From Sminthopsis crassicaudata (lineage: Eukaryota), in the NCBI RefSeq assembly GCF_048593235.1, contig NC_133622.1, positions 179,738,001 to 179,802,000 of the forward strand: DNA of 64,000 nt. The letters are read 5' to 3'. The position numbers were made by a program, and so were the translations under genes. Below are positions 8,551 through 46,130 of this stretch, piece by piece (the stretch's first letter is position 1; each line of letters starts with the position of its first letter). The notes under the pieces were generated by a model. That model was given only the letters and a program-made list of their open reading frames with translations, was not told the DNA's origin and ran no database searches.

Positions 8551-9185
8551 CTCCAAGTTAAGTATGCCTGGTTTAAAATGACATCACACACCATAGAGTA
8601 TGGAGAGAATATAGAGAGGAAAGGAGAGAAAAGGGGAGTCCAAGACTAATGCTAAATCTGTAGCCTTAGTAAAACTAATGATAATTAGGACTCTCCATGT
8701 TCAGTTACACTCACACACCATTCCAAAATGCCATCACATAAATTCACTCAATCAGTATAATCTGTGTAAAGAGCTCTTGTTCCACTTATATTTTGCTTCA
8801 TAAATGTCAGGGTAAGATGTGCTGAGATACTTGTTTTCAATAAATACCTTCTAATAAGACAGACACACTCACTGACCAAAAGGTAAACAGTCAAGATTAA
8901 AAATGCCTAAAAATCAAGAGCTCAAGATCCAAAAACCTCTGCAAAATAAAATCTTGAATGTATGGATTTCAAATGTTCCCCTTTCAGAGATGCTTACAAA
9001 CTCTCTCTGAAGCCATGATAATAAATATAAGCAATATAAGGACCAAAACTCATGAAATGTATAAAACAACTAGACAGATGAGAATTGGAAGGACCATTCA
9101 GGATACAGATACCCAATGAGAAGTGAGGTATGTAAGGAGACAAGAACCAATACTGGGCTGAACTCAAGAGGACTGAGATACATAC

Positions 9186-9372
9186 ATGTTAGCCTCTCCC
9201 GCAACTCAGGTGTAGGAGCCATGTCCACAGCACTTTTGCCATGACAATTGACCAATGTGGGGTCAGCTCCATGACTAAGCAGCAAAGAACAAACTTCCAC
9301 ACGATTCTTGGAGGCGGCCTCATGGAGAGGAGTGAACTGCCAGAGATCCATAGCATTGACACAAGCTCCGTG
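9186..9372 (-). CDS. TNKS: TNKS coding exon (about exon 8), 187 nt: [62 protein letters not shown]
   Basis: Acceptor CTCTCCCCATTCTAG with an upstream CTAAT branch-like motif; donor CAT|GTATGT. Confidence 0.97.
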
Positions 9373-19388: not shown

Positions 19389-21305
19389 CTTTTAAGCCCA
19401 CAATCTATGAGGAGAGCTATTCTGCTGGTGATCCAATTGAAACTGGTCAGTTGGGAAACTCCTTCCTTCCACATAGGGTATTACATACCCTTATCTATAG
19501 AAGCTCTAAAATCTTTGTTTTTTTTAGATGGTTGAAGCCCAAGATATGTTGGAATTTACTGCTTAGATTTCTTTCTTAAAGACCAGGCTTTCAACCAAAA
19601 CTACTCTCTCAGTGATTAGCTATGTAGAATGAATGAAAAAGAAGAGTCAAGGATACCACAAAGATTACAAACCTGGGTAAACTGGAAGCATGGTGGTAGC
19701 ACAGGAGATGGGCCAGTAATATATAAAGAGTGAGGAAGAAGATATGGACAGGTCATGGGTTACACTGGTTTCCCTGAAATATTAAGGAGCCAAATTAAAG
19801 TCTACAGACCTGCTTCCAACTCAACCCCCTGCCCCCATAGCCATAAATTATCATGGAAAAGGGGCCCACCTTCCTCATTACCACCAGCAATAACTGCTAA
19901 CCAACTGCCATCAACAGGCAGACAGGCACTGGAATCCTGGGAGTGGAAGCATTGGCAGACCCCCGTCCCTGCTTCCAGCCCAGCCTTCACAGCCATTATC
20001 TGGAGAGAGAGCTTCTGTCAAGAAAGGACCAGTCATTCTCACCAACTATCACCTCCATCCAAGGCACACAACTCAGACTAGCTGAAAAGCCAGACACCCT
20101 GACGGGGAGGCAGGAGGCAGCACAGGCCAGCCAAGTCAAACCATAGCCTTCATCACCATCTCCTTGGTGAACAGCCAGGCTTCCAGCTTAGTGCCCTCAG
20201 GCCTCATCCTAGGAAGTAGCTCCCAGGGAAGTGGATATAGCCACCTGTCTATTGCTCAGGCAGGGCCACAACTGCTCCAGTCACAGCTTCCAAAGACCCA
20301 ATGAAAGAAGCTCTTATAGCATCAAAGTCAGTGGCCTTGTCACATTCAACATCAAAAACCAATAATAATAAGTAAGTGGAAATGACATGAAATATGAGGC
20401 ACCACATTTTCTCTGCAATTGTGTTCCAAAGACCAGGGGAACTTCCTATCTGACATACAGTAGAAACCCTCCCTCCTATTATCTCTTTCCCATTAAAATG
20501 GGAACTTCTAGGGTTCTGACTGACTTTTCAGTTTGTATCAAAAGTGATGAAAACAGTTTGACATATAGTGATCATTTGCTTTATTTACCATATGCCTCAC
20601 ACAGTAAAAGAGTGCTTATATAAATTAAGATTTTAGTACAGTACATCTATAGTTTTGGAGAAAGCCAAAATATTCTATAAATAGAAATGTCAATAGAAAT
20701 CCTGTCCATGTATTAGGTTTCTGAGTTTCCCTGTCCTAATGCCTTGCTATTTTATAACTGTACACTCTTAAGAAAATACTCTCAAGGCTTTCTATTATTA
20801 TGGATATTGAATCTAAATAACTCAATATCAATATCAAATATCAAGTAACTCAAAATCTAGCCAGTAATAGTACCTGCTTATGTTTCTATTTGAAATTATT
20901 AACCAATAAAAGAATCCAATGTATAATAGGATAAAAGCAAGTAATAGGATTTTAGCTTCTCAGCAGGAAAAAAACCCTAAATTTAGATCTTTGGTTGAAT
21001 CAAGTTTGTGTTTTTTATTGTTTGCATAACCTTTGGCAAGTCACTGGATCTACTAGACTAGGTAATGTCTAACAGCCCTTCCAGGTCTTCATGATCCTAT
21101 CATGATAGGATAAGCAGTCAACATAGTCAAGGAATGAACAGATTACAACTGGGATGAGAAAAGCAAACTTTGTTCTCAAATATTAGTTTAGTTATTGTGT
21201 CATTTCAGTCGTCTCTGATTCTTCCCTACCCCATTTGGGGTTTTCTTGGCAAAGAGGGGGGGGAGGGGGGGAGAGAGGGGAAGAGAGGGGGAGAGAGAGA
21301 GAGAG

Positions 21306-26439: not shown

Positions 26440-27250
26440 GTTAAATGACAACTTAACCAAACCCCTGCTCAATATTTTCTCTTACTATTGAGGGCACCAT
26501 CATTCTCTCTGTCCATTAGACTTGCAATGTGAGTCTGCCTGAAATCTGCACTCTCTCTCACTATATCCAAATTATCATCAAGGCCTTGTGGCTTTGTTTT
26601 TATAACATCTCTTGAAGATGTCTCCTTCTCTCCCCTGACACAAGTTCCCTCCACATACCTCTCCCAACCATCTTCACCTCACATCTGGACTACTGCAATA
26701 ACTACTAGTGGTATGCCAGCCTTAAGTCTCTCCTGAATCCAATCCACCTTCCAAATGACTTATAAAAAATAGTTTTTGTAAAGTGTAGGTCAGAACATGT
26801 TATTCTCTTGCTCAATAAATTCTAGTGGTTCCCTAATATCTCCAGGATCAAACAAAATCCTTTTGGTAACGAAAGCCCTTTCTAACCTGTTCTCACTCTG
26901 CCTTTCCAGTTTTTTAATACCTTACTTTTCCTGCCAGGTACTCTTTGATCCAGTGATAGCATATGATGAGCAGTGATAGCATATGATGAGCACTCAATAA
27001 ATGTCTGCTGGGAAAACAATCCCACCTGTATAGGAAGTCTTTCCTAATCTTTGTAATTATAGTGCCATCCCTCTGTATACTTCCAATTTATCTTGTGCAT
27101 ATGTGTAATACACAGCTATCTGCATGTCCTCTCTCCCATGAGATGGTGAACCCTTGTGAAGCAGAGACTGGCCATTGTCTTTCTTTGTATCACCAATGCT
27201 TAGAATAGGCACCTAACACATAGAAGATACTCCATAAATGTTTTTGACTG
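26440..27250 (+). mobile_element. L2 3' fragment containing a 20-bp tandem duplication
   Basis: ctggactactgcaata L2 hallmark; cagtgatagcatatgatgag x2 at 26951-26990. Confidence 0.7.
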
Positions 27251-27929: not shown

Positions 27930-29560
27930 GGTATTTTGATTCAATCAATCAATATGTATTAAATATCTATTATATGCCAGGCACTGTGCTAAGTACTAGG
28001 GACACAATGAGGCCAAAAATAGTCTCTATCATCAAGACACAATTTGATGGGGGAGACAACATACACATATGGACAACAAAATGAGTTCTATAGAGGATAA
28101 ATAGAAAGTAATTGAAAGGGAAACAGTGGAAATAAGACGACTAGGGAAAGTTTCCTACAGAAAAGGGGATTTTAGTTGGGATTTAAAAAGGAAGGCAGAG
28201 AGATCAGGAGTCAAGCAAAGGAGGTAGAACATTCCAGGTTAATGGGGAACATCCAGAAGAATTATCTGGAGGCAAGAGATTATATAAGGGAGTAAGTTGT
28301 AAGAAGACTGAAAAGGTAGGAAGGGATTGGATATTTTGCTTTTGCACAGAAATTTATTTTGTAGAGGGATAATAGGAAGCCCTGAGCTTTAGGAAAATCA
28401 CTTTAGTGGCTGAATGGAGTTTAGATGGAGTGAGTTCAAGCAGATCCACCCACCAATCAGTACAAAAGTCTTAAATGTGAGGTGATGAGAGCTTGTACCA
28501 GTTGGGGGCAAAGTCAGAGGAGAAAAGGGGATATGTTTGAGTGATGCTGCAAAGGTAAAATTAGTAGATCTTGGTAACAATTTGAAGAGAGATAAAGAAT
28601 CCAGGATGTCTCCCTAGATCGCAAGACTAAGGGACTAGAAACATGGTAATGCCCTCAAAAATGATAAGGAAGACAGGAAAGTGAGGAGCTTAGGGGAAAA
28701 GATGATTCAGATATGTTAGTTTAAGATGTCTACTGGGCATCCAGTTTGAGATGTGAGATTGGAGATCAGCTGAGAGTTTAGGGCAGAAGAGAAAAATTTG
28801 AGAATCATTAGCAGAAAGACAGTCATTAAATCCACAGCTTTTAAAATCAGCAAGCAAATTGAACTCTGAGGGAAGGGTCATTTATGATTAGAGAGTGTGA
28901 TCTAGATAAGGGTGTAGCAAAAGAGACAAAGGAGTGATCAGATAGGCAGGAGAACCAGGAAAAAGTGGTGTCCTGAAAACCTAGACAGAAAAGAGTATGA
29001 AGGAGAAGAAAATGATTAACAGTGTCAAAGGTTGCAGAGAGACTGAGTGGAATGAATATTAAGAAAAGGCTACGAAATCTGGCAACTAAAAGATAATTTA
29101 ACTTTGGAGAGGGCAGTTTCAGTAGAATGATAAGATCATAAACCAGAAGAAAATGGAAGGGACTAAAAATAAGAGTGGAGATAAATGGAGAGTAATTTAT
29201 TGAAAGAGACAGGATTGAATGGGATCACTTTTACAGGTAGAAGAGTTAGCCTTGGTAAGGAATAAGTCCATTTCATCATGTAAATCAGAAATGAAGAAGA
29301 GTGTCGAAGAAGGAATCTGAGTAAAGGAAGAAGAAGAGGGGAAAAGACAAAACTCATGCTAGATGGCCTCATTTTCTTTTTCTGTAAAAATGAAGCAGGA
29401 TTCTCAGCTAAGAGAAAGAATAAGGGGAGGACTAAGGAGGGATGAGAAGGTTCTGAAAAGCCAAAGTAGAGAGTTGGAAAGTGATTTGATAAGGGAAGTA
29501 TAATAGGATTGCCTAATAGCAATAAGGGACCAGATGAGTTTGTGAAACAGTCAGAATTGT
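27930..29560 (-). mobile_element. Long L2 fragment
   Basis: Begins caatcaatcaatatgtattaaatatctattatatgccaggcactgtgctaag (reverse L2 3' end), followed by purine-rich L2 body. Confidence 0.75.
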
Positions 29561-29609
29561 TGTGTGATTTAATCAAACATTATATAGGAAAAGAGATATG
29601 ATTATTTAT

Positions 29610-29700
29610 ATCTATACAAAGATTATATATTATGTATATAGATAGATAGATATAGATACATATATATGTATATAGATATATACATACAAAGAGATATGTC
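29610..29700. repeat. (TA)/(TAGA) low-complexity repeat
   Basis: Read directly. Confidence 0.85.
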
Positions 29701-30919
29701 AATGCAAGCAGGATATATTTCAAGGATAGTGACACCTTCTTTAAAGGTAAAAGGCAAACCAATAATAATCCCAGAATCTGAGAATTTGAAAGGACTTCAG
29801 TGATTAAAAGCAGAATACATTGGGATTATCACTAAAACCAATTATCTTTCCTAATGTAGCTCAAGATGGTATTAGCTTTGGAGACTGCCACATCACACAG
29901 CTGACTCATACTTAATTTATAGGTCCCTAAAAAACTCCAGATCATTTTCAGAGCAATTCTCCATTCAGGTCTCCCTCATTTCACTATTATGGATCCTTAA
30001 AAAAAAATTTTTTTTTTAAATCTTAGAAAATGCAATACAATGCTTTAGCCAAAGAAGATTTCTTGGGATACTGACTCATCCAGTATCATAGCAGCTCCTC
30101 TCAGTTTGGGATCATTTGTAAATGTGATAGCAAATGATATTAGAATTAGTAAAATCATTTTCTGGTCCATGGGACACTCCACTTAATAGTGTCTCATGGA
30201 AAAGAACAGAGAGACTTCTGTTTTGTAGTAGCCCAGCAGCACCGTGGGTATCTCTTTGTACAAAGCTTTTTCTTGTACCTAGATCTAAAAAAACAAATTG
30301 CTAGTTTGATTGGGGGTGAGGAGATGGGAGGGGGAGAAATCAGGACAGGAAGGGGAATCTAAGAAACAATCATAGCTATTGTTTCTGTTTCTAACCCAGT
30401 ATTTCCTCTTCATTGAATGTAACCCACACATGTACACTAAGAGCATGTCTTTGGCTTTATTCCAATTATTCACTTCAAAATTTTTCTGTGGTAGAATGGA
30501 AGACTATAGAATTTGGAATATATAGGGCTTGAGTTCAAATTCCCACTCTATTTTCTACCTGTGTGAACAAAATCAGTCACACGTCCCCACTATGGCTCTT
30601 GGTTTCCCCATGTGTAAAACAAGAAAGCTGGCCCAGTTCTCTATCAATGATCCATGATGAAGGGAGGGAGAAGAATGGAGAGGAGATATTCTTTATTTCT
30701 TTTTGTCCTTGATATAACTGAAGATTTTTAAAGCTCTTTCGCTTTTTAAAAAGTCTGTATATTTTCAGACCAAAATAGTTTGTCCAAATATGACAATATA
30801 TATAAAAACAAACGCAGATAAGGTAAAAGTTTAAAAAAAAATCACAGAAGACATAAGCAAGTTGCCATGTCTCAGGTTTAGATCCCACTTAATTATTTTC
30901 ATGTTAAATTACTGTTAGT

Positions 30920-31870: not shown

Positions 31871-33016
31871 AAAAGCAGAGAGAACCCTATTCTCAAGGAA
31901 GACAACACATATTAGAGGTTTTAATGGCACAGTGGATGAAAAGGTCCTATGGTCCTTAGGTATATCTGACAAAGCAGATGGTAACACATCATTTTCCTTT
32001 TATTTCATTTCCAGTCATAAAACTAAATCAGTTTCTCACACTGAACCATTTCATAATACCAAAGACTGACTTTGGTATGGTGGTGAGAAAATTCTTTTCT
32101 GCATCTTCAGGAGCTGTGGCTGTGAGGAGATAAGGGAGGCAGGAAAAGTGGTCTAAGGAGCACAACTATTTCCAAGGCTATAGGAGATTTACATTTAAAA
32201 ATAACTTTTTCAAATGAATCTAAATATAAATCCTCACATTTTTATGTCTCTTTTTAGAGATGGGTGGGTGGTTAGGTTTTCTTAGAGTATTATTACATAC
32301 AAATAATAATCTCCCAAGCAGAAATATTTTGAAATCCAGTTAGATATTGTAAAATGTCAGTGTAAACACCTTCATTTTAACACTGTTATCATACACAAAA
32401 GAATCATTATAAATGCACAGTAACTTCATGATCCAGCAGGTAGCAGCAACAATATGAATGCCTAAAGAAGGATGAAGAAGAGAAAGACAGAGAAACTACA
32501 GAGAGATAGACTCAGAGACAGAGGGGATTGGGAGAGAGAAACCAAGTACTGGATCAATAGCTCTGAAATAATAAGCAAATCATAACAAGGGGACTCTAGG
32601 GCTTAGGGTGAGTTCTTGAAGGAGAATTCATAAAAAGACATGAAAAAGAAATGCATAGTACAGGCTCACCTAAGAAGCAGTTTCTAGTATTTTAAACTCT
32701 TTGAAGGTAGGGAATTAGGTCCTTAATTTAGGTCTTTACAAAGAGCCTAATACATAACCAGCACTGACAGTCAACAGCACCTATTTGGCCTCTCAGTAAG
32801 AATATAATTTGAATAAAGGAGTGTATGAAAAGGGTAGAGAAGTAATGTACATAAGCAGTTGGACTGAGTCAGAATTAACAGCTCTCCATGACTAGTAGGG
32901 ATGTTCTGTACCTGGTGACTGATTTGATGACCACAAATGGTTGTGGCTAGGTTCCACATTAGTAATCACTATTTCTCAACCTTTTAAGAACCATGAGTGG
33001 TTTTTTGCTTGTTTAA

Positions 33017-33030
33017 ACGCGCGCGCACAC

Positions 33031-33071
<41 letters not shown>
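33017..33071. repeat. (CG)n/(CA)n alternating purine-pyrimidine tract
   Basis: acgcgcgcgcacacacacgcacac...; 55 bp. Confidence 0.95.
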
Positions 33072-33074
<3 letters not shown>

Positions 33075-33374
33075 CGCAGATAGGAGCCTGAAAAATTACA
33101 AATGTTCAAGTTTAGCCTCTAAAATAAACTCTTTGCCAGTTTCTTCCTAATCGCCACATAGTGAATCTTCATAAGAAACCAGAGGCCTTAACTCACTAAT
33201 GAGGTGGGAGAAAAGAGAGAAGGGAACATTGCTGGATAAAGAGCAAGACTTATTCCAAAGGCGATCATGGCTACTTATTTCATTTACTACACTACTTATA
33301 TCTTAATTTCCCAAGTCAGCTCCAAACTTTGGGCTTTTTTTTTTTTTTTTGGGGGGGGGGGTTGTTTGGATATG

Positions 33375-38579: not shown

Positions 38580-38735
38580 NNNNNNNNNNNNNNNNNNNNN
38601 NNNNNNNNNNNNNNNNNNNNNNNNNNNNNNNNNNNNNNNNNNNNNNNNNNNNNNNNNNNNNNNNNNNNNNNNNNNNNNNNNNNNNNNNNNNNNNNNNNNN
38701 NNNNNNNNNNNNNNNNNNNNNNNNNNNNNNNNNNN
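38580..38735. other. Assembly gap (156 N)
   Basis: Read directly; followed by a polypurine tract to about 38860. Confidence 1.
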
Positions 38736-39890: not shown

Positions 39891-41058
39891 TGCCTCAGTT
39901 CAAACTCCCAGAAATACGACAAACTGTTTTCTGAGAAGATGCTGAGACCACCTCTTCCCCTATTCACAGCTTCTAGTGGGAGTGGCTCATAAAGAACAGT
40001 GACATCTCTATCCTAATCTATATTGGAGCCATTACTAAATAAAGATCCTGAATATACAACAGTGTCTGAGGACATTGCTTCTGTACTCTCAGAGCTTCCT
40101 TAAGCTGACTCTCTCCCAAAAACATGCTTTTATAAGAATTAATTGCAAGGTGATCAAGAAAGAGTAAATCTAACCTATAAAATGCCAACATCAAGGAAAG
40201 GCATTTTTAAAAATAAGAGGATTACCTTCTTTAAATAATAGTTTATCATTTTAAGTGGATGTCATTTATCTAAAAGATAAATCTAAAAGAGAAGGCACTA
40301 TTATTATTTTACCACAAATTAGTCAAGTTCTCAGGAAAGGCACATGATAATTTACTTTAACAGGTAGAAGATATTTCTTTTAAAATGAATAAAAGTTAAC
40401 AATGAAAAACCTTTGACACATGAATATCAGTTATTTTTGAAATCCCGATAGTCCAAGGCACCATGCTCTTAAGGTGTATTCTATAAATCCTTAGAAAAAC
40501 TTTGCAGATGTAGTTCCCAACCACTATGATGTCATAAAACATCACAAAAGTACATGAAGGTAATAGACTAGGCAACAGTTAATTATACATTATCTATAGT
40601 GCCTTAAAATTATAACAAGTCCCTTTAATGAACTTATCTGCCTTCCCCTTCCTAATCTAGGTTCTTTTTCAAAAAATAAGTTCAATACATAAATATTCAG
40701 TCAAAGAAAAAAGCAGAAAAACTGTGTATCTCAAAAAAATCTTATATTTCCCCTCAACTTGAAAAATCAAAATATTAACAACGTTAAAAGAAACCCTACT
40801 TCTGCTAAAAATTAATAGGAAGATGAATAAAACTTAATAAAGAGTAAAAAACAGTTTTTATTTTCTAATTTCCATTAGCACATGTGGAAAAGAGCACTGT
40901 GCAAGTATGAATTTCATTATTGACAAACCAAATCTAGATAAGTAACCGTTGTCAATGCCTGACATTTCAAAGATTTCCTTGAAATCTAGTTTGGGAGCTC
41001 CAAAAATTTGTTGTAATTGCCAATAATATTTATAGCACTGAATGCTGTGGTAAAAAAG

Positions 41059-41127: not shown

Positions 41128-41203
41128 CTTCCGCCCATCACTTGCATGGCAATTCACATTTAGAGGTGTCAGTAAAGCCATCAGTTTCTCTTCATTACCA
41201 CTC
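41128..41203 (-). CDS. TNKS: TNKS coding exon (about exon 5), 76 nt: [25 protein letters not shown]
   Basis: Acceptor TTTTATTTTTTAG; donor AAG|GTAAGT. Confidence 0.97.
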
Positions 41204-42003
41204 CTAAAAAATAAAATCAATCAATAAAAAATAGTTTCATATAGCCACATACTCTTATTCCTTACACTAAAATCTCTATTTGCTATTATCTCTTTCACAT
41301 GAATCCGGATTACTGATATTTTCCAATGTCATCAGTATTTTTCCAAATAATCACTCTCATTCTTCCTATTCCAGGATGTCCTAATAGAGCCTTGGGCTCC
41401 GGGCACCTCCGTCATAGACCTACACAAAGCCATTTTCTTGATGATCAAAATGAACTTCATACTGCTATCATGTGACCAATAGCATTAGAGCTAGAAAAAT
41501 AAATAAAATGCTATGAAAAGGAAAAAGCTAATAGTTAAATTTTAAAAGCTCTAAAAAACAAAAAAGAGAAAGAAAGATTTTTTTCTGACTGAATATTTGC
41601 CATATACTTGCTACTCTGGCTTTCTTTGGAAAAAAATCTCAAAGAAAAACATCCTGAAAATAAAGCTTTAAGACATAGGAATTAACAAAAACATGTTCTT
41701 AATATACTATTTAGTTCTAAAAACCTAGGGATCTTAGAGGTATGAGGCTTCCTGGCACTATCTTATAAACCAATCTAATTAATAATGCTTATAACCAACA
41801 CCATAATGAAAGATAATTTCATTAACCATCCTTACACCCATTTATAACAAAGACAAAATCTTCAGAGCTGTACTGGCCAATCTAACCACATTATCTCATA
41901 CGGTCAAAGCAAGACAGTGATAACATAACATGTATACAGTTCCCCCACCCCCTTCTTCCTTTCAAATGCATTGTACTTACTTAAATTGAATGAAATCACT
42001 TAC

Positions 42004-42040
42004 CTAGCAGCTTCTAGGAGTTCGTCCTTCTTGTATTCAC
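42004..42040 (-). CDS. TNKS: TNKS coding exon (about exon 4), 37 nt: (G)EYKKDELLEAA(R)
   Basis: Acceptor CATCTAG with a TGCTAAC branch-like motif about 28 nt upstream; donor TAG|GTAAGT. Confidence 0.96.
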
Positions 42041-42062
42041 CTAGATGATTGCAAAATATCAT

Positions 42063-42850
42063 GCTGTTAGCATTTGGCAGAAGACAGATGAAGAAATGCA
42101 GCAGGCAGCAAATACAGAATTAAACAGAGGAAGAACGGGGAAAAAAAAAAAAAAAAAGAGCCCACACCCCGCTGGGTGATGGAGCCGTGACGTGAGCCAG
42201 CTTGTGAAGCAGGCAGCATCACCAGTGCCTTGGAGACCGGCAGCAAATTGACGCAGCTTCTTGTCCAATCCTCCGATGAAATGGCTTGCTTCAGACAACC
42301 AATGAATGTGCAATCTTGGATCCAGAAACACATTCCCCTCTACTAACAGCAGGCCAGCGGAAGACAATGTCCCTTCCCCCCCCCTCCCTTATTCAGACTG
42401 TCACACTAGACTCGTGGAGCATAATCAATTCTGAAGCAAAAGCCAAACACAGTGCGGCTCTTTAAAGGGACAAAATATAACCGTCTTTGAAACACTCCCT
42501 TCCTCATCCCCCTCCAAAATACACTCCTGATTTATTTAGAAGGACAAAGAAAGTTTGTTTTTAAGGTGGTTATTATTACTCTGTAACTATCCATGTTGGG
42601 GCTTCACAGTCCTTAAATAAACTGCAAATAGAAGAAGCAGAGATGTCTCGCCTTCATAGAGAGAGGATGGGTCTGTAGGAAAAAATCCAGGGAAACATGC
42701 ACAGAATGGGATGACCCTTTTATAAGGCAGCGCTCCCTCACATCAGCAAACACAGGGAAATGCTTGGTATATGGCACCAAATGTCCTTTGCTTCCAGAGT
42801 TCTAATAGAGGATTTAGCACAATCTGGGGGTGGGCGTGGGCAATCCTTTA
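42063..42850 (-). promoter_or_regulatory. Candidate internal (alternative) TNKS promoter
   Basis: About 11 CpG in 42136-42483 in an otherwise CpG-poor window. CCAAT at 42265 and 42299; TGACGTGA at 42188; TGACGCA at 42249; minus-strand TATAAAAG at 42717-42724; GC/GT boxes at 42826-42840; no recognisable repeat. Function is inferred. Confidence 0.55.
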
Positions 42851-45800
42851 ACAAACTCAACCCAAATAAAAGCAGAGTATTCTATTACCTGGGCAGGAAC
42901 CAAAGCCTTCCAGTTGAGAGATTCTGGTCTAGTTTTTTGGTTTTTTTTTTTTTTTTTAATTATTACATATAAAAGACTGGATTTTTGAATTCACCATAAT
43001 AATTTTAGCAAATCAATAGCCAAATTGTTTAGGGACTCAAAATACCAGGTTTCTTTTGTAATGTCAAGTGAAGGACAAAGGATTTTTAAAAAATGTATCA
43101 CTTGAAAAATGAGAGACTAACCTGTGACTCAGCATTAATACATTGCCTCAGTTTGTTACATCATTAAAACAAAAATAATTCTCCCAAAGACAGTAAATAT
43201 ATGGAAGCATTTTAAAAATTCACTTTACAAAAGAAAAAGTCAGCAGAAGCAAAGGGTTTATTCTAAAAAAAAAAAAAAATTACATCAAACAGAAGTTAGT
43301 TTAAAATACGTAACCATTTACCTACAGACTTATTCCATGTTTTGCTCTGGGACTATAGCAAGAGAGCCCCACCCACTAGCCATACATCTGTACCTGGCTC
43401 TGTGTTGCCACTAGACCAAAATTAATTTAACATTAAGGAACCCTAACTATAGGCTTTCATATTTTTTAAAGAGTAGTATTAAAATCATTTAAATTTACAA
43501 TTTGATGTAGTGTGCCCAGACAGATCCAGATTCAAGAATGGACTAGACGAGGACAGATCACTTCAATAACATGATACAAGTTTCAAATCTGGCCACTAGT
43601 ACCTACTAGCTAAGTTCATAAGGAAGAACAGCTTTGTTATAAGGACACAAATGCATGATCACAAAAACTCAATCAACTAATTCATGTAGTCTTGATGTAG
43701 GTCTACAGGTGGATTTGAGTTAGTCCTTGAACTAGAATGGGAAAATATTTTTTTATTTGTTTCAATATAACTGAATAATGTTTTATTTTATGCATTTAAA
43801 ACTCAGTTTGGGAAGGGTTCCACATGTTTTACCAAACTGCAAAAAGAGTCCAAGACAAAAAAAAAAAAAAAAAAAAGAAAAGATTGAGAATTAAGAATTT
43901 GATCCAGCCCAATATCATCATTCTATAGATGAGGAACTTGACATCCCAAAAAGGAATATGGACTGCTTAAAAAGTACCACATATATTAAGATGTTAGTAT
44001 TTGAACTCACTTGCCCAATGTTATAAACTGCATAAATTAAAAGATCCTTCTTGAAAACCAGACACAAATTTAATGAAGCAGTAAGGCCTGATGTGAAATG
44101 TAATTATTTGAAACCTACAATCTAAAGTTGTTTTAAGAATTGAAGGCTTCAGCTGACAAATGCTAGAGGGATACAGCTAAATCCATCTTAATTTCTAGGA
44201 TATATGTAATGCTAATATAAAATACAGCAAAATTATGAATACAACACAACATAGGATATTCACTTCCATGCTATAAGTGCTTGTGTTCGTTTTGCAGTAA
44301 AAAGAGATTTAAAAATCCCTTTTAGCTTACCATAACCTGGATTGTAAGCTAAGCTGATAATGACATCATTAGATATGAAATGGGTCCCAAAGAATGAATG
44401 GGAGGGAACAAGAGTGTGTACCTGTAAATCCTGGCATCACCTAAGATACTGGATCTCCTAATTCATACAATTTTATTTAGAAGCTCCATCTAAAACATCC
44501 ATTCTAATGTCTCAATCTACACACTAAGTACTATACAGTACTACGTATGTATATACATACTGTACATAATAGCATATACAGCTGTTGTTTTTAAATAAGC
44601 AAGCAAAAACCCTCTAAATTTTCACAGAAATCCACAACTGTGTGCACACAAAAGACATAGGTGTTAAAATGACTCTTTGTTCATTGTCTTCTGTGCTCTG
44701 GTTTTTAATCAGTATCTGCAATATATTCTAACATCCACTATCTGGTGCTCAAGGACCACCATCTATAAACAGCAAGAATTATTTTTCACATATACCTCTT
44801 CAGGAACCAGGAACATAATGAATTCAAAGCTTCATATAACACTGACAACAAATCTGAACAACTTATTTTTAATCATTCAACCTCCAGCTTTTTCCTATTT
44901 GCTGAGGATCTGAAAATATTCTGGCTCTGATGCTCTGTGGAACTATATTCTATAATAATACACAGATAAAAATTTGCAATAGATCAGCCAGGGAGGAAAC
45001 TGGCAATTACAATCAAGATAATAGCATACAGAAATGATGAGAATAAATGGGTTAAAATATTTTTTATTTGATTAAAAAAACTAAGTGGAATTTTTAAAAA
45101 TGAGCACCCATCCCCCAAAAAGATTGTAATTTCCTATGTTAATTCTCCAAAAAGTTTTGAACTACTTTTATTGCTCCTTACAAATGACAAAATAGAGGTG
45201 AAAGAAACTGTATATTTATTTCTTCTGCAATCCAACAAGTATTTCTTACAAATCACACAGTCTGTCTTCAAGGAGTTTCCATTCTTCTGAGTGAACATGT
45301 GCAGAGAGATGTGCATACTCAATGTAAATAGAAGAAATGCAACATAATGGAAGGGAGGAGGAAGCTGAAAGAAAAACTGTACTAACTGAGGACATTTAAA
45401 AAAAAACGAAAAAAACCCAACTTATTGGTCAGGGACCCTGAACTTGGCACTGAAGGGAGGCAGTTAAGAAAGCCTTCCAGGAATGAGGGGCAGTCAAAGC
45501 AAAAGGCTGCTGGGTTGAGAAGAAACACTGAAAATAAGGGGACCTATTCAACCTGAACAGAGTGTACATATCGGTGTTTGAAAGGAATCAGGAGGGTCAA
45601 TAAAAGACAAATTTATAAAGATGAGGTGCCAAAATTTTCTTTTGACTCTGTGTACATTTGGGAATGAATATGAAGAATACAGAGAGGCAAGAGAAAACTC
45701 ATGAAGAATTGATGATGATGAATAAATCAAGCGGTATCAGGAAAGTAATAAATATAATATCAACAAAAACTTAAAAACCCAGAAAACAAACCGCATATTC

Positions 45801-45899
45801 AGAAATTACAATGACTAAGCCTGGCAACAAAGGGAGAAGAGAAAATGCAGAGAGGGACAATGTTGCTATGGGACTCTAAAACGAATGCTCATGGTGAGA

Positions 45900-46130
45900 G
45901 ACATCATGACACAAGATAAAAGTGCTGATTTAGAGTCAAAAATATTGGTTTAAAATAAGCCTCAAACGTTTACCAATTTGTATTAACCCTGGAAAGTCAC
46001 TTAACTTCTTATCCTCAGATTCCTAACTGGAAAAATGGGGATAATAACAGCTCTCCAACAGGTTCATTGTAAGAATTAAATGAGATAATATATGTAATGA
46101 GTTTTTCAAGCCTCAAGGTACTATATAAAT
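45900..46130 (+). mobile_element. MIR
   Basis: aagtcacttaacttcttatcctcagattcctaactggaaaaatggggataataac. Confidence 0.7.

Follow-up and report, generated by a model that had tools for sequence, protein, structure and literature searches.

Tankyrase-1 is a drug target with ties to Wnt/AXIN, telomeres and GLUT4 traffic, and its choice of substrates depends on four peptide-binding ARCs carried by a partly rigid scaffold. The tankyrase-binding motif is bound by ARC1, 2, 4 and 5 and not by ARC3, and ARC1-3 form a rigid unit (PMC5727255, PMC9688111). AXIN prefers the ARC pairs 1+2, 4+5 or 2+5, the strongest binder being ARC2 (PMC5727255, PMC9688111).

Tankyrases that lack the N-terminal HPS region are already known. 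In mice whose Tnks gene lacks promoter 1 and exon 1, a 3' transcript persists in the testis only, with a smaller protein that is seen by anti-SAM antibodies and not by anti-HPS antibodies; this short product, named TANK1a, was attributed to an alternative promoter on the basis of the EST AK046840 (Chiang et al. 2008, PLoS One 3:e2639, PMC2441437). TNKS2 is likewise a natural tankyrase without HPS, with the same ARC-SAM-PARP layout (PMC9688111), but it is the product of a separate gene and keeps all five ARCs. A third group consists of automatic tankyrase-1 models devoid of exon 1, which start at the Met of exon 2 (MGANVHARDDGG..., 1090 aa) or at leaders joined to GFGRKDVV. They also lose the HPS region through alternative first exons, but they retain most of ARC1, their junction lies at exon 2 and their leader peptides are not conserved. 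The placental and marsupial NCBI models P0467, P0474, P0498, P0503 and P0505 start at MGANVHARDDGG and represent this common exon-1-less form, which is distinct from a start at ARC2.

The locus described here lies in a stretch of 64,000 nt of Sminthopsis crassicaudata DNA, called the window below, which does not reach the exon 2 junction of those models. It contains an in-frame ATG immediately upstream of the first exon of ARC2, from which a tankyrase-1 devoid of HPS and ARC1 is predicted. The likeness of the predicted product to TANK1a would be that of an N-terminally shortened tankyrase-1 without HPS, issued from a promoter inside the gene, and the restriction of TANK1a to the testis fits the CpG retention of the block described below. 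A sequence-only reading of this DNA had mentioned a shorter mouse tankyrase-1 isoform; such an isoform does exist, and it is the testis-specific TANK1a (PMC2441437). The text of that paper gives no first exon or start codon for TANK1a (PMC2441437). The primers F151 and R576 (R576 at AKDKGG) imply a unique leader of at least 170 nt; with a junction at the 37-nt exon the leader would measure about 364 nt, and junctions at the exon before or at the two after fit equally. Within the window, the mouse TANK1a primer has no match with up to 3 mismatches, the best ungapped alignment (11-12 of 20) being at chance level. The predicted isoform is therefore no more than a possible equivalent of TANK1a. 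In the literature searched, neither a mention of an internal promoter of tankyrase nor the peptide IFCNHLGEYK was found; the conserved start codon and peptide reported here have no description there, and the predicted isoform itself is partly anticipated by TANK1a and by automatic gene models.

Position of the locus within the tankyrase-1 gene

The tankyrase-1 exons of the window lie on the same strand and in the right order:

42004..42040, minus strand: 37-nt exon, (G)EYKKDELLEAA(R), the first of ARC2, followed by the donor gtaagt
41128..41205, minus strand: next exon (ARC2, continuing after ...EAAR)
about 10700, about 10020, 9372-9190, 4299-4180, about 2680 and about 2490, minus strand: further TNKS1 exons

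The peptide GEYKKDELLEAAR encoded by the exon 42040-42004 is identical to the TNKS1 chains 3utm, 6cf6, 6urq and 5jhq, and exon 9372-9190 is identical over 61 residues to the Tankyrase-1 chain 5jhq_A. The sequence EYKKDELLEAAR occupies residues 5-17 of the ARC2-3 construct 6urq_A, and TGEYKK is found from residue 164 of the ARC1-3 construct 5jhq_A. EYKK thus stands at the very beginning of the one construct and well inside the other, which places the start of ARC2 at the exon 42040-42004. The G of GEYKK is residue 332 of a 1327-aa mammalian TNKS1. The exon peptides of the window match those of the Tasmanian devil and the tammar wallaby in 7 cases out of 7 and those of opossum and koala in 6 out of 7, with lower scores for the other groups.

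No ARC1 exon was found within 42041-64000, so that the intron upstream of the 37-nt exon exceeds 22 kb. The gene extends over 113 kb in Varanus and 142 kb in the gar. At the other end of the window, the alignment to bird and lizard in 2408-2701 is continuous over two exons and the short intron that separates them, with 71-74% identity.

The in-frame ATG upstream of ARC2

Across the intron-exon boundary, the minus strand of the window reads ATG ATA TTT TGC AAT CAT CTA G^GT GAA TAC AAG AAG GAC GAA CTC CTA GAA GCT GCT AG^gtaagt, where a caret marks each exon boundary. The elements of this region are the following:

42041..42062, minus strand: ATG (42062-42060) and six further codons, MIFCNHL, with the G of the acceptor AG completing the Gly codon
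42120..42122, minus strand: in-frame TAA, 20 codons above the ATG at 42062, with no in-frame ATG between them
42059..42073, minus strand: four-codon uORF ATG CTA ACA GCA TGA (MLTA), whose stop TGA (42061-42059) overlaps the main ATG (ATGA)
42066..42070, minus strand: branch-point-like motif CTAAC, its A 27 nt upstream of the exon; replaced by CTGAC in sea bass and Girardinichthys

The ATG stands in the context aacagcATGa, with A at -3. The frame is closed upstream by the TAA at 42122, around which the motif gtttaattc is kept in bird and lizard, and the translation of MIFCNHL consequently requires initiation at 42062. The sequence-only reading had reported this ATG, its frame into the 37-nt exon, the A at -3 and its being the sole ATG after the in-frame TAA, and each of these points is found again as described. 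Its deduction that a start here would remove HPS and ARC1 while keeping ARC2-5, SAM and PARP also holds, and corresponds to the loss of residues 1-331 with the frame open into ARC2. The in-frame ATG and the MIFCNHL reading upstream of the 37-nt exon are real. Taken from a single genome, the observation is no more than chance: among 13,000 mock AG acceptors of the window, an in-frame ATG occurs before the first stop at 20-22%, and within about 24 nt at about 10%. It is the conservation between species, and not this window by itself, that raises the ATG at 42062 above chance.

The bases 42041..42062 are also the last 22 nt of the canonical TNKS1 intron, with the acceptor AG at 42042-42041, and the ATG is located between the CTAAC motif and this AG. 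Among the elements of a 3' splice site (branch point, pyrimidine tract and AG), CTAAC at -27 and the AG are present and the tract is weak (0.60 pyrimidine), which suggests that the bases 42041-42062 serve both roles. Splicing to the AG located 25 nt farther upstream instead would bring a TGA in frame, and an extension of the full-length protein is thereby ruled out.

Further ATGs are found upstream on the minus strand at 42219, 42333 and 42422, and those at 42422, 42219 and 42073 are conserved; the uORF at 42073 is kept in bird and lizard and absent from fish. A transcription start upstream of 42219 would yield a leader carrying the conserved upstream ATGs 42422, 42219 and 42073, thereby reducing the use of the ATG at 42062.

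Conservation of the start codon, the frame and the peptide

The comparison drew on four genomic loci, those of two teleosts, sea bass (L001) and Girardinichthys (L002), of a bird, the sunbittern (L003), and of an agamid lizard (L004); placental mammals, amphibians, sharks and TNKS2 are not represented. In five genomes out of five (the window and the four loci), the reading is ATG AT[A/C] TT[T/C] TG[C/T] AA[T/C] CAT [C/T]TA G^GT. MIFCNHL is unchanged in sea bass, Girardinichthys, sunbittern and agamid lizard, and in a painted-turtle protein. The five variable sites in the seven codons comprise four third positions and one synonymous first position of Leu, so that all the changes are synonymous, and there is no indel. 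Five random substitutions would spare MIFCNHL with P=2.5e-5; restricting the null to pyrimidine-friendly changes raises this value to 5e-4, and seven codons provide limited statistical power. The substitution pattern inside the 37-nt exon is alike (7 of 8 variable sites are third positions), and the 19 columns preceding the ATG contain 9 variable ones and one indel. The A at -3 is kept in both groups, the context being aacagcATGa in amniotes and gacaccATGa in fish.

The last 30 nt of the introns preceding six other TNKS1 exons (C-H) served as a control. Between species, bird and lizard included, 9-18 of these 30 positions match, as against 29 of 30 in bird and lizard and 23-24 of 30 in fish for the 30 nt that precede the 37-nt exon. 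The pyrimidine content of the latter flank, 0.60, is the lowest of the seven (0.65-0.95 for the others), as expected if coding limits the sequence. Among the amniotes, the 60 nt before the exon hardly vary at all (29 of 30 in both halves), and this conservation, which extends beyond the codons, points to a non-coding constraint as well.

The sequence-only reading had made its prediction depend on the conservation of the ATG and of its frame. At the level of the genomic sequences compared, it is established that start codon, frame and peptide have all persisted between teleosts and amniotes, the substitutions being of the coding type only: MIFCNHL is retained, with nothing other than synonymous changes, in both fishes, the bird, the lizard and the turtle protein.

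An apparently conserved frame before the previous exon (..YCFCFPC^TVLLQH) was rejected, being a pyrimidine tract read as Cys, Phe, Leu and Pro codons, with indels and non-synonymous changes. Many gene models (P0207, P0274, P0424, P0228 and P0269) begin in that intron (..YCFCFPC^TVLLQHGADPN), which is TG- and pyrimidine-rich at about 9120-9210 of the sea bass locus.

The conserved block upstream of the 37-nt exon

Conservation extends well above the ATG and comprises these features:

42041..42477, minus strand: conserved non-exonic block directly upstream of the 37-nt exon, defined by the bird and lizard alignments
42299..42303 and 42265..42269, minus strand: ATTGG (inverted CCAAT), both kept in bird and lizard at matching distances
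42249..42253 and 42188..42192, minus strand: CGTCA (CRE half-site), the second within tCACGTCAc, both kept in bird and lizard
42168..42219, minus strand: upstream ATG at 42219 and open frame MLPASQAGSRHGSITQR-G to the conserved GGG^GTGTGG, with GT at 42167-42166
42141..42157, minus strand: run of 17 T in a pyrimidine-rich stretch, which is pyrimidine-rich in bird and lizard too, the sequence itself not being conserved

The identity is 83% to the bird over 42477-41997 and 86% to the lizard over 42395-41997. Within 41250-46000 these are the only stretches that align, and in the rest of the window the alignments are confined to exons, so that 42477-42041 stands alone as a non-exonic block shared with either species; the bird and lizard loci extend only 2.5-3 kb upstream of the exon, and the alignment therefore says nothing about regions farther out. 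Around the 37-nt exon the conservation is one-sided, reaching some 360-440 nt on the upstream side and only about 7 nt on the downstream side. Nowhere in the window are CpGs as frequent as in this block, with 8 per 300 nt, about 8-fold the window mean of 1.0, and an observed/expected ratio of 0.41-0.48 against 0.10 for the whole window, whose GC content is 0.36. With a GC content of 0.47-0.52 and this ratio, it falls short of a CpG island as usually defined (GC >0.5, o/e >0.6, >200 nt). No repeat copies of the block were found within the window, its comparison with Rfam returned no family, and exact database look-ups of its 88-aa and 102-aa ORFs returned no record. We read the block 42477-42041 as a candidate internal promoter and leader, that is, as an alternative first exon.

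Several other elements were considered. The frame opened by the ATG at 42219 is positioned like the leader exon of sea bass isoform X3; as a conserved coding leader it was rejected, since bird and lizard have an in-frame TAA. The similarity between 42270-42160 and the sea bass X3 leader, which includes CGTCACGGC and GGGGTG, is not significant when compared with shuffled sequences, and the 9-mer of this similarity is absent in Girardinichthys. The motif TATAAAAG, at 42724-42717 on the minus strand, falls beyond the stretch shared with bird and lizard and consequently has no support as a promoter element.

Gene models and expression

Database tankyrases of 357-1139 aa were searched and their N-termini mapped to exons. 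Most of the alternative N-termini fall at exon 2 (GFGRKDVV). The painted turtle (Chrysemys picta bellii) contributes the UniProt entry A0A8C3IVL8, 916 aa long, which begins exactly with MIFCNHLGEYKK; this automatic model has a gap in its interior and an unusual C-terminus. The N-terminal peptide MIFCNHLGEYK, put forward from the window sequence as a diagnostic, thus has an exact counterpart among database proteins, in the form of an automatic model. Gene models of this kind often begin in introns.

Other models join leaders to the 37-nt exon. This is the case of sea bass X3 (MNVLWSLPATHRHGNRSQR^GEYKK) and X4 (MAEKERKRRREGGGPRR^GEYKK) (XP_051268871/2), whose leader exons lie at most 340 nt upstream of the exon, with the donors G^gtgcgc and G^gtagaa, of Girardinichthys X2/X3 (XP_047228404/6), whose leader exons are joined to the same ARC2 exon, and of house sparrow X3 (XP_064273409), which reads MLRGWQK^GEYKK. 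In these fish and sparrow models the leaders are spliced onto the canonical acceptor, so that MIFCNHL is removed and other N-termini are used. Together with A0A8C3IVL8, all of them start at or just before the same ARC2 exon, and all are predictions and not characterised proteins. The sparrow peptide MLRGWQK was not found in the window, in the bird flank or in the lizard flank. Each fish locus contains two leader ORFs (26916-27045 in sea bass; 40118-40225 in Girardinichthys), within about 340 nt of the ARC2 exon, with micro-introns of about 200-280 nt, and the leader MNVLWSLPATHR..SQR is common to both fishes.

Residues 1-31 of a swan-goose model (P0280) are the translation of the homologue of the block, with an 84% match to 42256-42161 of the window. 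Among the marsupial NCBI isoforms listed, none starts at the 37-nt exon, and a large search of representative sequences with exon F gave nothing but fragments the size of an exon and a single invertebrate-like tankyrase. Four RNA-seq runs, all of the same study, contain 0.40-0.50 of the sampled words of 42004-42900, which as word shares are weak evidence, and several sequencing runs of unspecified type contain 0.62-0.91. The conserved block and the exon together make up 53% of 42004-42900, a figure that is compatible with these shares and proves nothing.

Discussion

The model we propose assigns two uses to the same 22 nucleotides and probably accounts for the locus: an ancient internal promoter and first exon would yield a tankyrase-1 without ARC1. 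In the canonical pre-mRNA, the 22 nt before the 37-nt exon are the stretch between the branch point and the acceptor. Other transcripts would begin in the block of about 400 nt at 42477-42041, run through the acceptor and not be spliced to the ARC1 exons, and in these the ATG at 42062 would become the start codon. The predicted product would consist of MIFCNHL followed by residues 332 to the end, that is ARC2-ARC5, SAM and PARP without HPS and ARC1, or about 1003 aa on the 1327-aa numbering. The promoter would possibly be active in the germ line, as suggested by the CpG retention and by the mouse testis data. The isoform would bind fewer or differently arranged partners, since one of the four peptide-binding ARCs would be missing. 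The position of the transcription start, the use of the ATG in vivo, the tissue bias and the functional consequences are thus what we infer from the conservation, which itself is read directly from the genomes.

The conservation could have another origin. The block may be maintained for RNA processing, namely for the control of splicing of the 37-nt exon, or as a transcriptional enhancer, the ATG and the open frame being by-products. In favour of this reading, which we hold to be unlikely, the constraint on the amniote 60-nt flank and on the 400 nt or so above it goes far past seven codons, the branch-point motif is conserved too, and an exon of 37 nt behind so weak a pyrimidine tract may need extra signals. 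Against it stand the fish-amniote changes, which are all synonymous, with a period of three and no indel, in a pattern that breaks exactly at the ATG, and the purines of the supposed pyrimidine tract, which do not vary over the fish-amniote distance. The restriction of the conservation to one flank of the exon, the gene models of several species that start here and the lack of an Rfam family also speak against it. A simple coincidence, that is, an in-frame ATG occurring by chance at the end of an intron and having no significance, draws on the high base rate found with the mock acceptors; it is very hard to reconcile with an ATG, a frame and a peptide shared by five genomes from teleosts to amniotes when the flanks of six other exons are unconserved, and we regard it as highly improbable.

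It may also be that the internal promoter is real and that its main products bypass the ATG at 42062, either through spliced leaders with lineage-specific N-termini or through initiation at the next Met (...EEKLMALL...), MIFCNHL being confined to a minor unspliced form. The sea bass X3/X4, Girardinichthys X2/X3 and sparrow X3 models, which all join a leader to the canonical acceptor, agree with this possibility, as do the donor-like site GGG^GTG kept at 42168/42167 and the models that start at MALLTPLNV (P0304, P0471). The leader peptides, however, are not conserved, bird and lizard have a TAA that interrupts the equivalent frame, and neither the window nor the two flanks contain the sparrow peptide, whereas MIFCNHL is the only N-terminus conserved across all the lineages sampled. 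We consider this possibility distinctly unlikely, and retain initiation at the ATG at 42062, in transcripts issued from the internal promoter, as the preferred reading.

Could the heptapeptide have a function of its own? A bolder version of the preferred reading, which we put forward as a doubtful speculation, would be that a second TNKS1 promoter, internal and perhaps germ-line- or testis-biased, has been maintained in vertebrates for over 400 million years for the synthesis of a three-site tankyrase (ARC2, ARC4 and ARC5 bind) in which the rigid ARC1-3 unit is broken and which carries the hydrophobic tag Met-Ile-Phe-Cys-Asn-His-Leu. The tag itself, and not just the ATG, is conserved, which would mean that its seven residues have their own function. 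If so, the tag might be acetylated or lipidated at its N-terminus, for targeting to membranes or to the Golgi, or might cap ARC2, and the short form would act as a regulator in its own right rather than as a simple truncated version.

An isoform of this kind, conserved and devoid of HPS and ARC1, would differ in avidity and geometry towards bivalent partners, and, judging from the literature (PMC5727255), the loss of ARC1 would affect AXIN binding. It would escape exon-1-directed antibodies and knock-outs, as TANK1a did in the mouse knock-out (PMC2441437), and such an escape could explain residual tankyrase-1 signals in 'null' animals. The locus offers three handles for its study: a diagnostic peptide, a 400-nt candidate promoter element and a single mutable ATG.

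Other features of the window

A second patch retaining CpG lies at 32901-33300, in the 30-kb intron between the second and the third ARC2 exons, with 7-8 CpG per 300 nt and an o/e of 0.57-0.68; it does not align to bird or lizard. The wallaby X5, camel, sea snake and sparrowhawk models start at leaders joined to the exon that follows this patch; a search of the window for the wallaby X5 leader gave no match. At 38580-38735 the sequence consists of 156 N (assembly gap or masked sequence). The region 19800-20300 is GC-rich (0.52-0.56) yet CpG-poor, and the 2-kb stretch 28001-30000 shows a strong GC skew (+0.34) together with an AT skew (+0.23); both are probably repeats.
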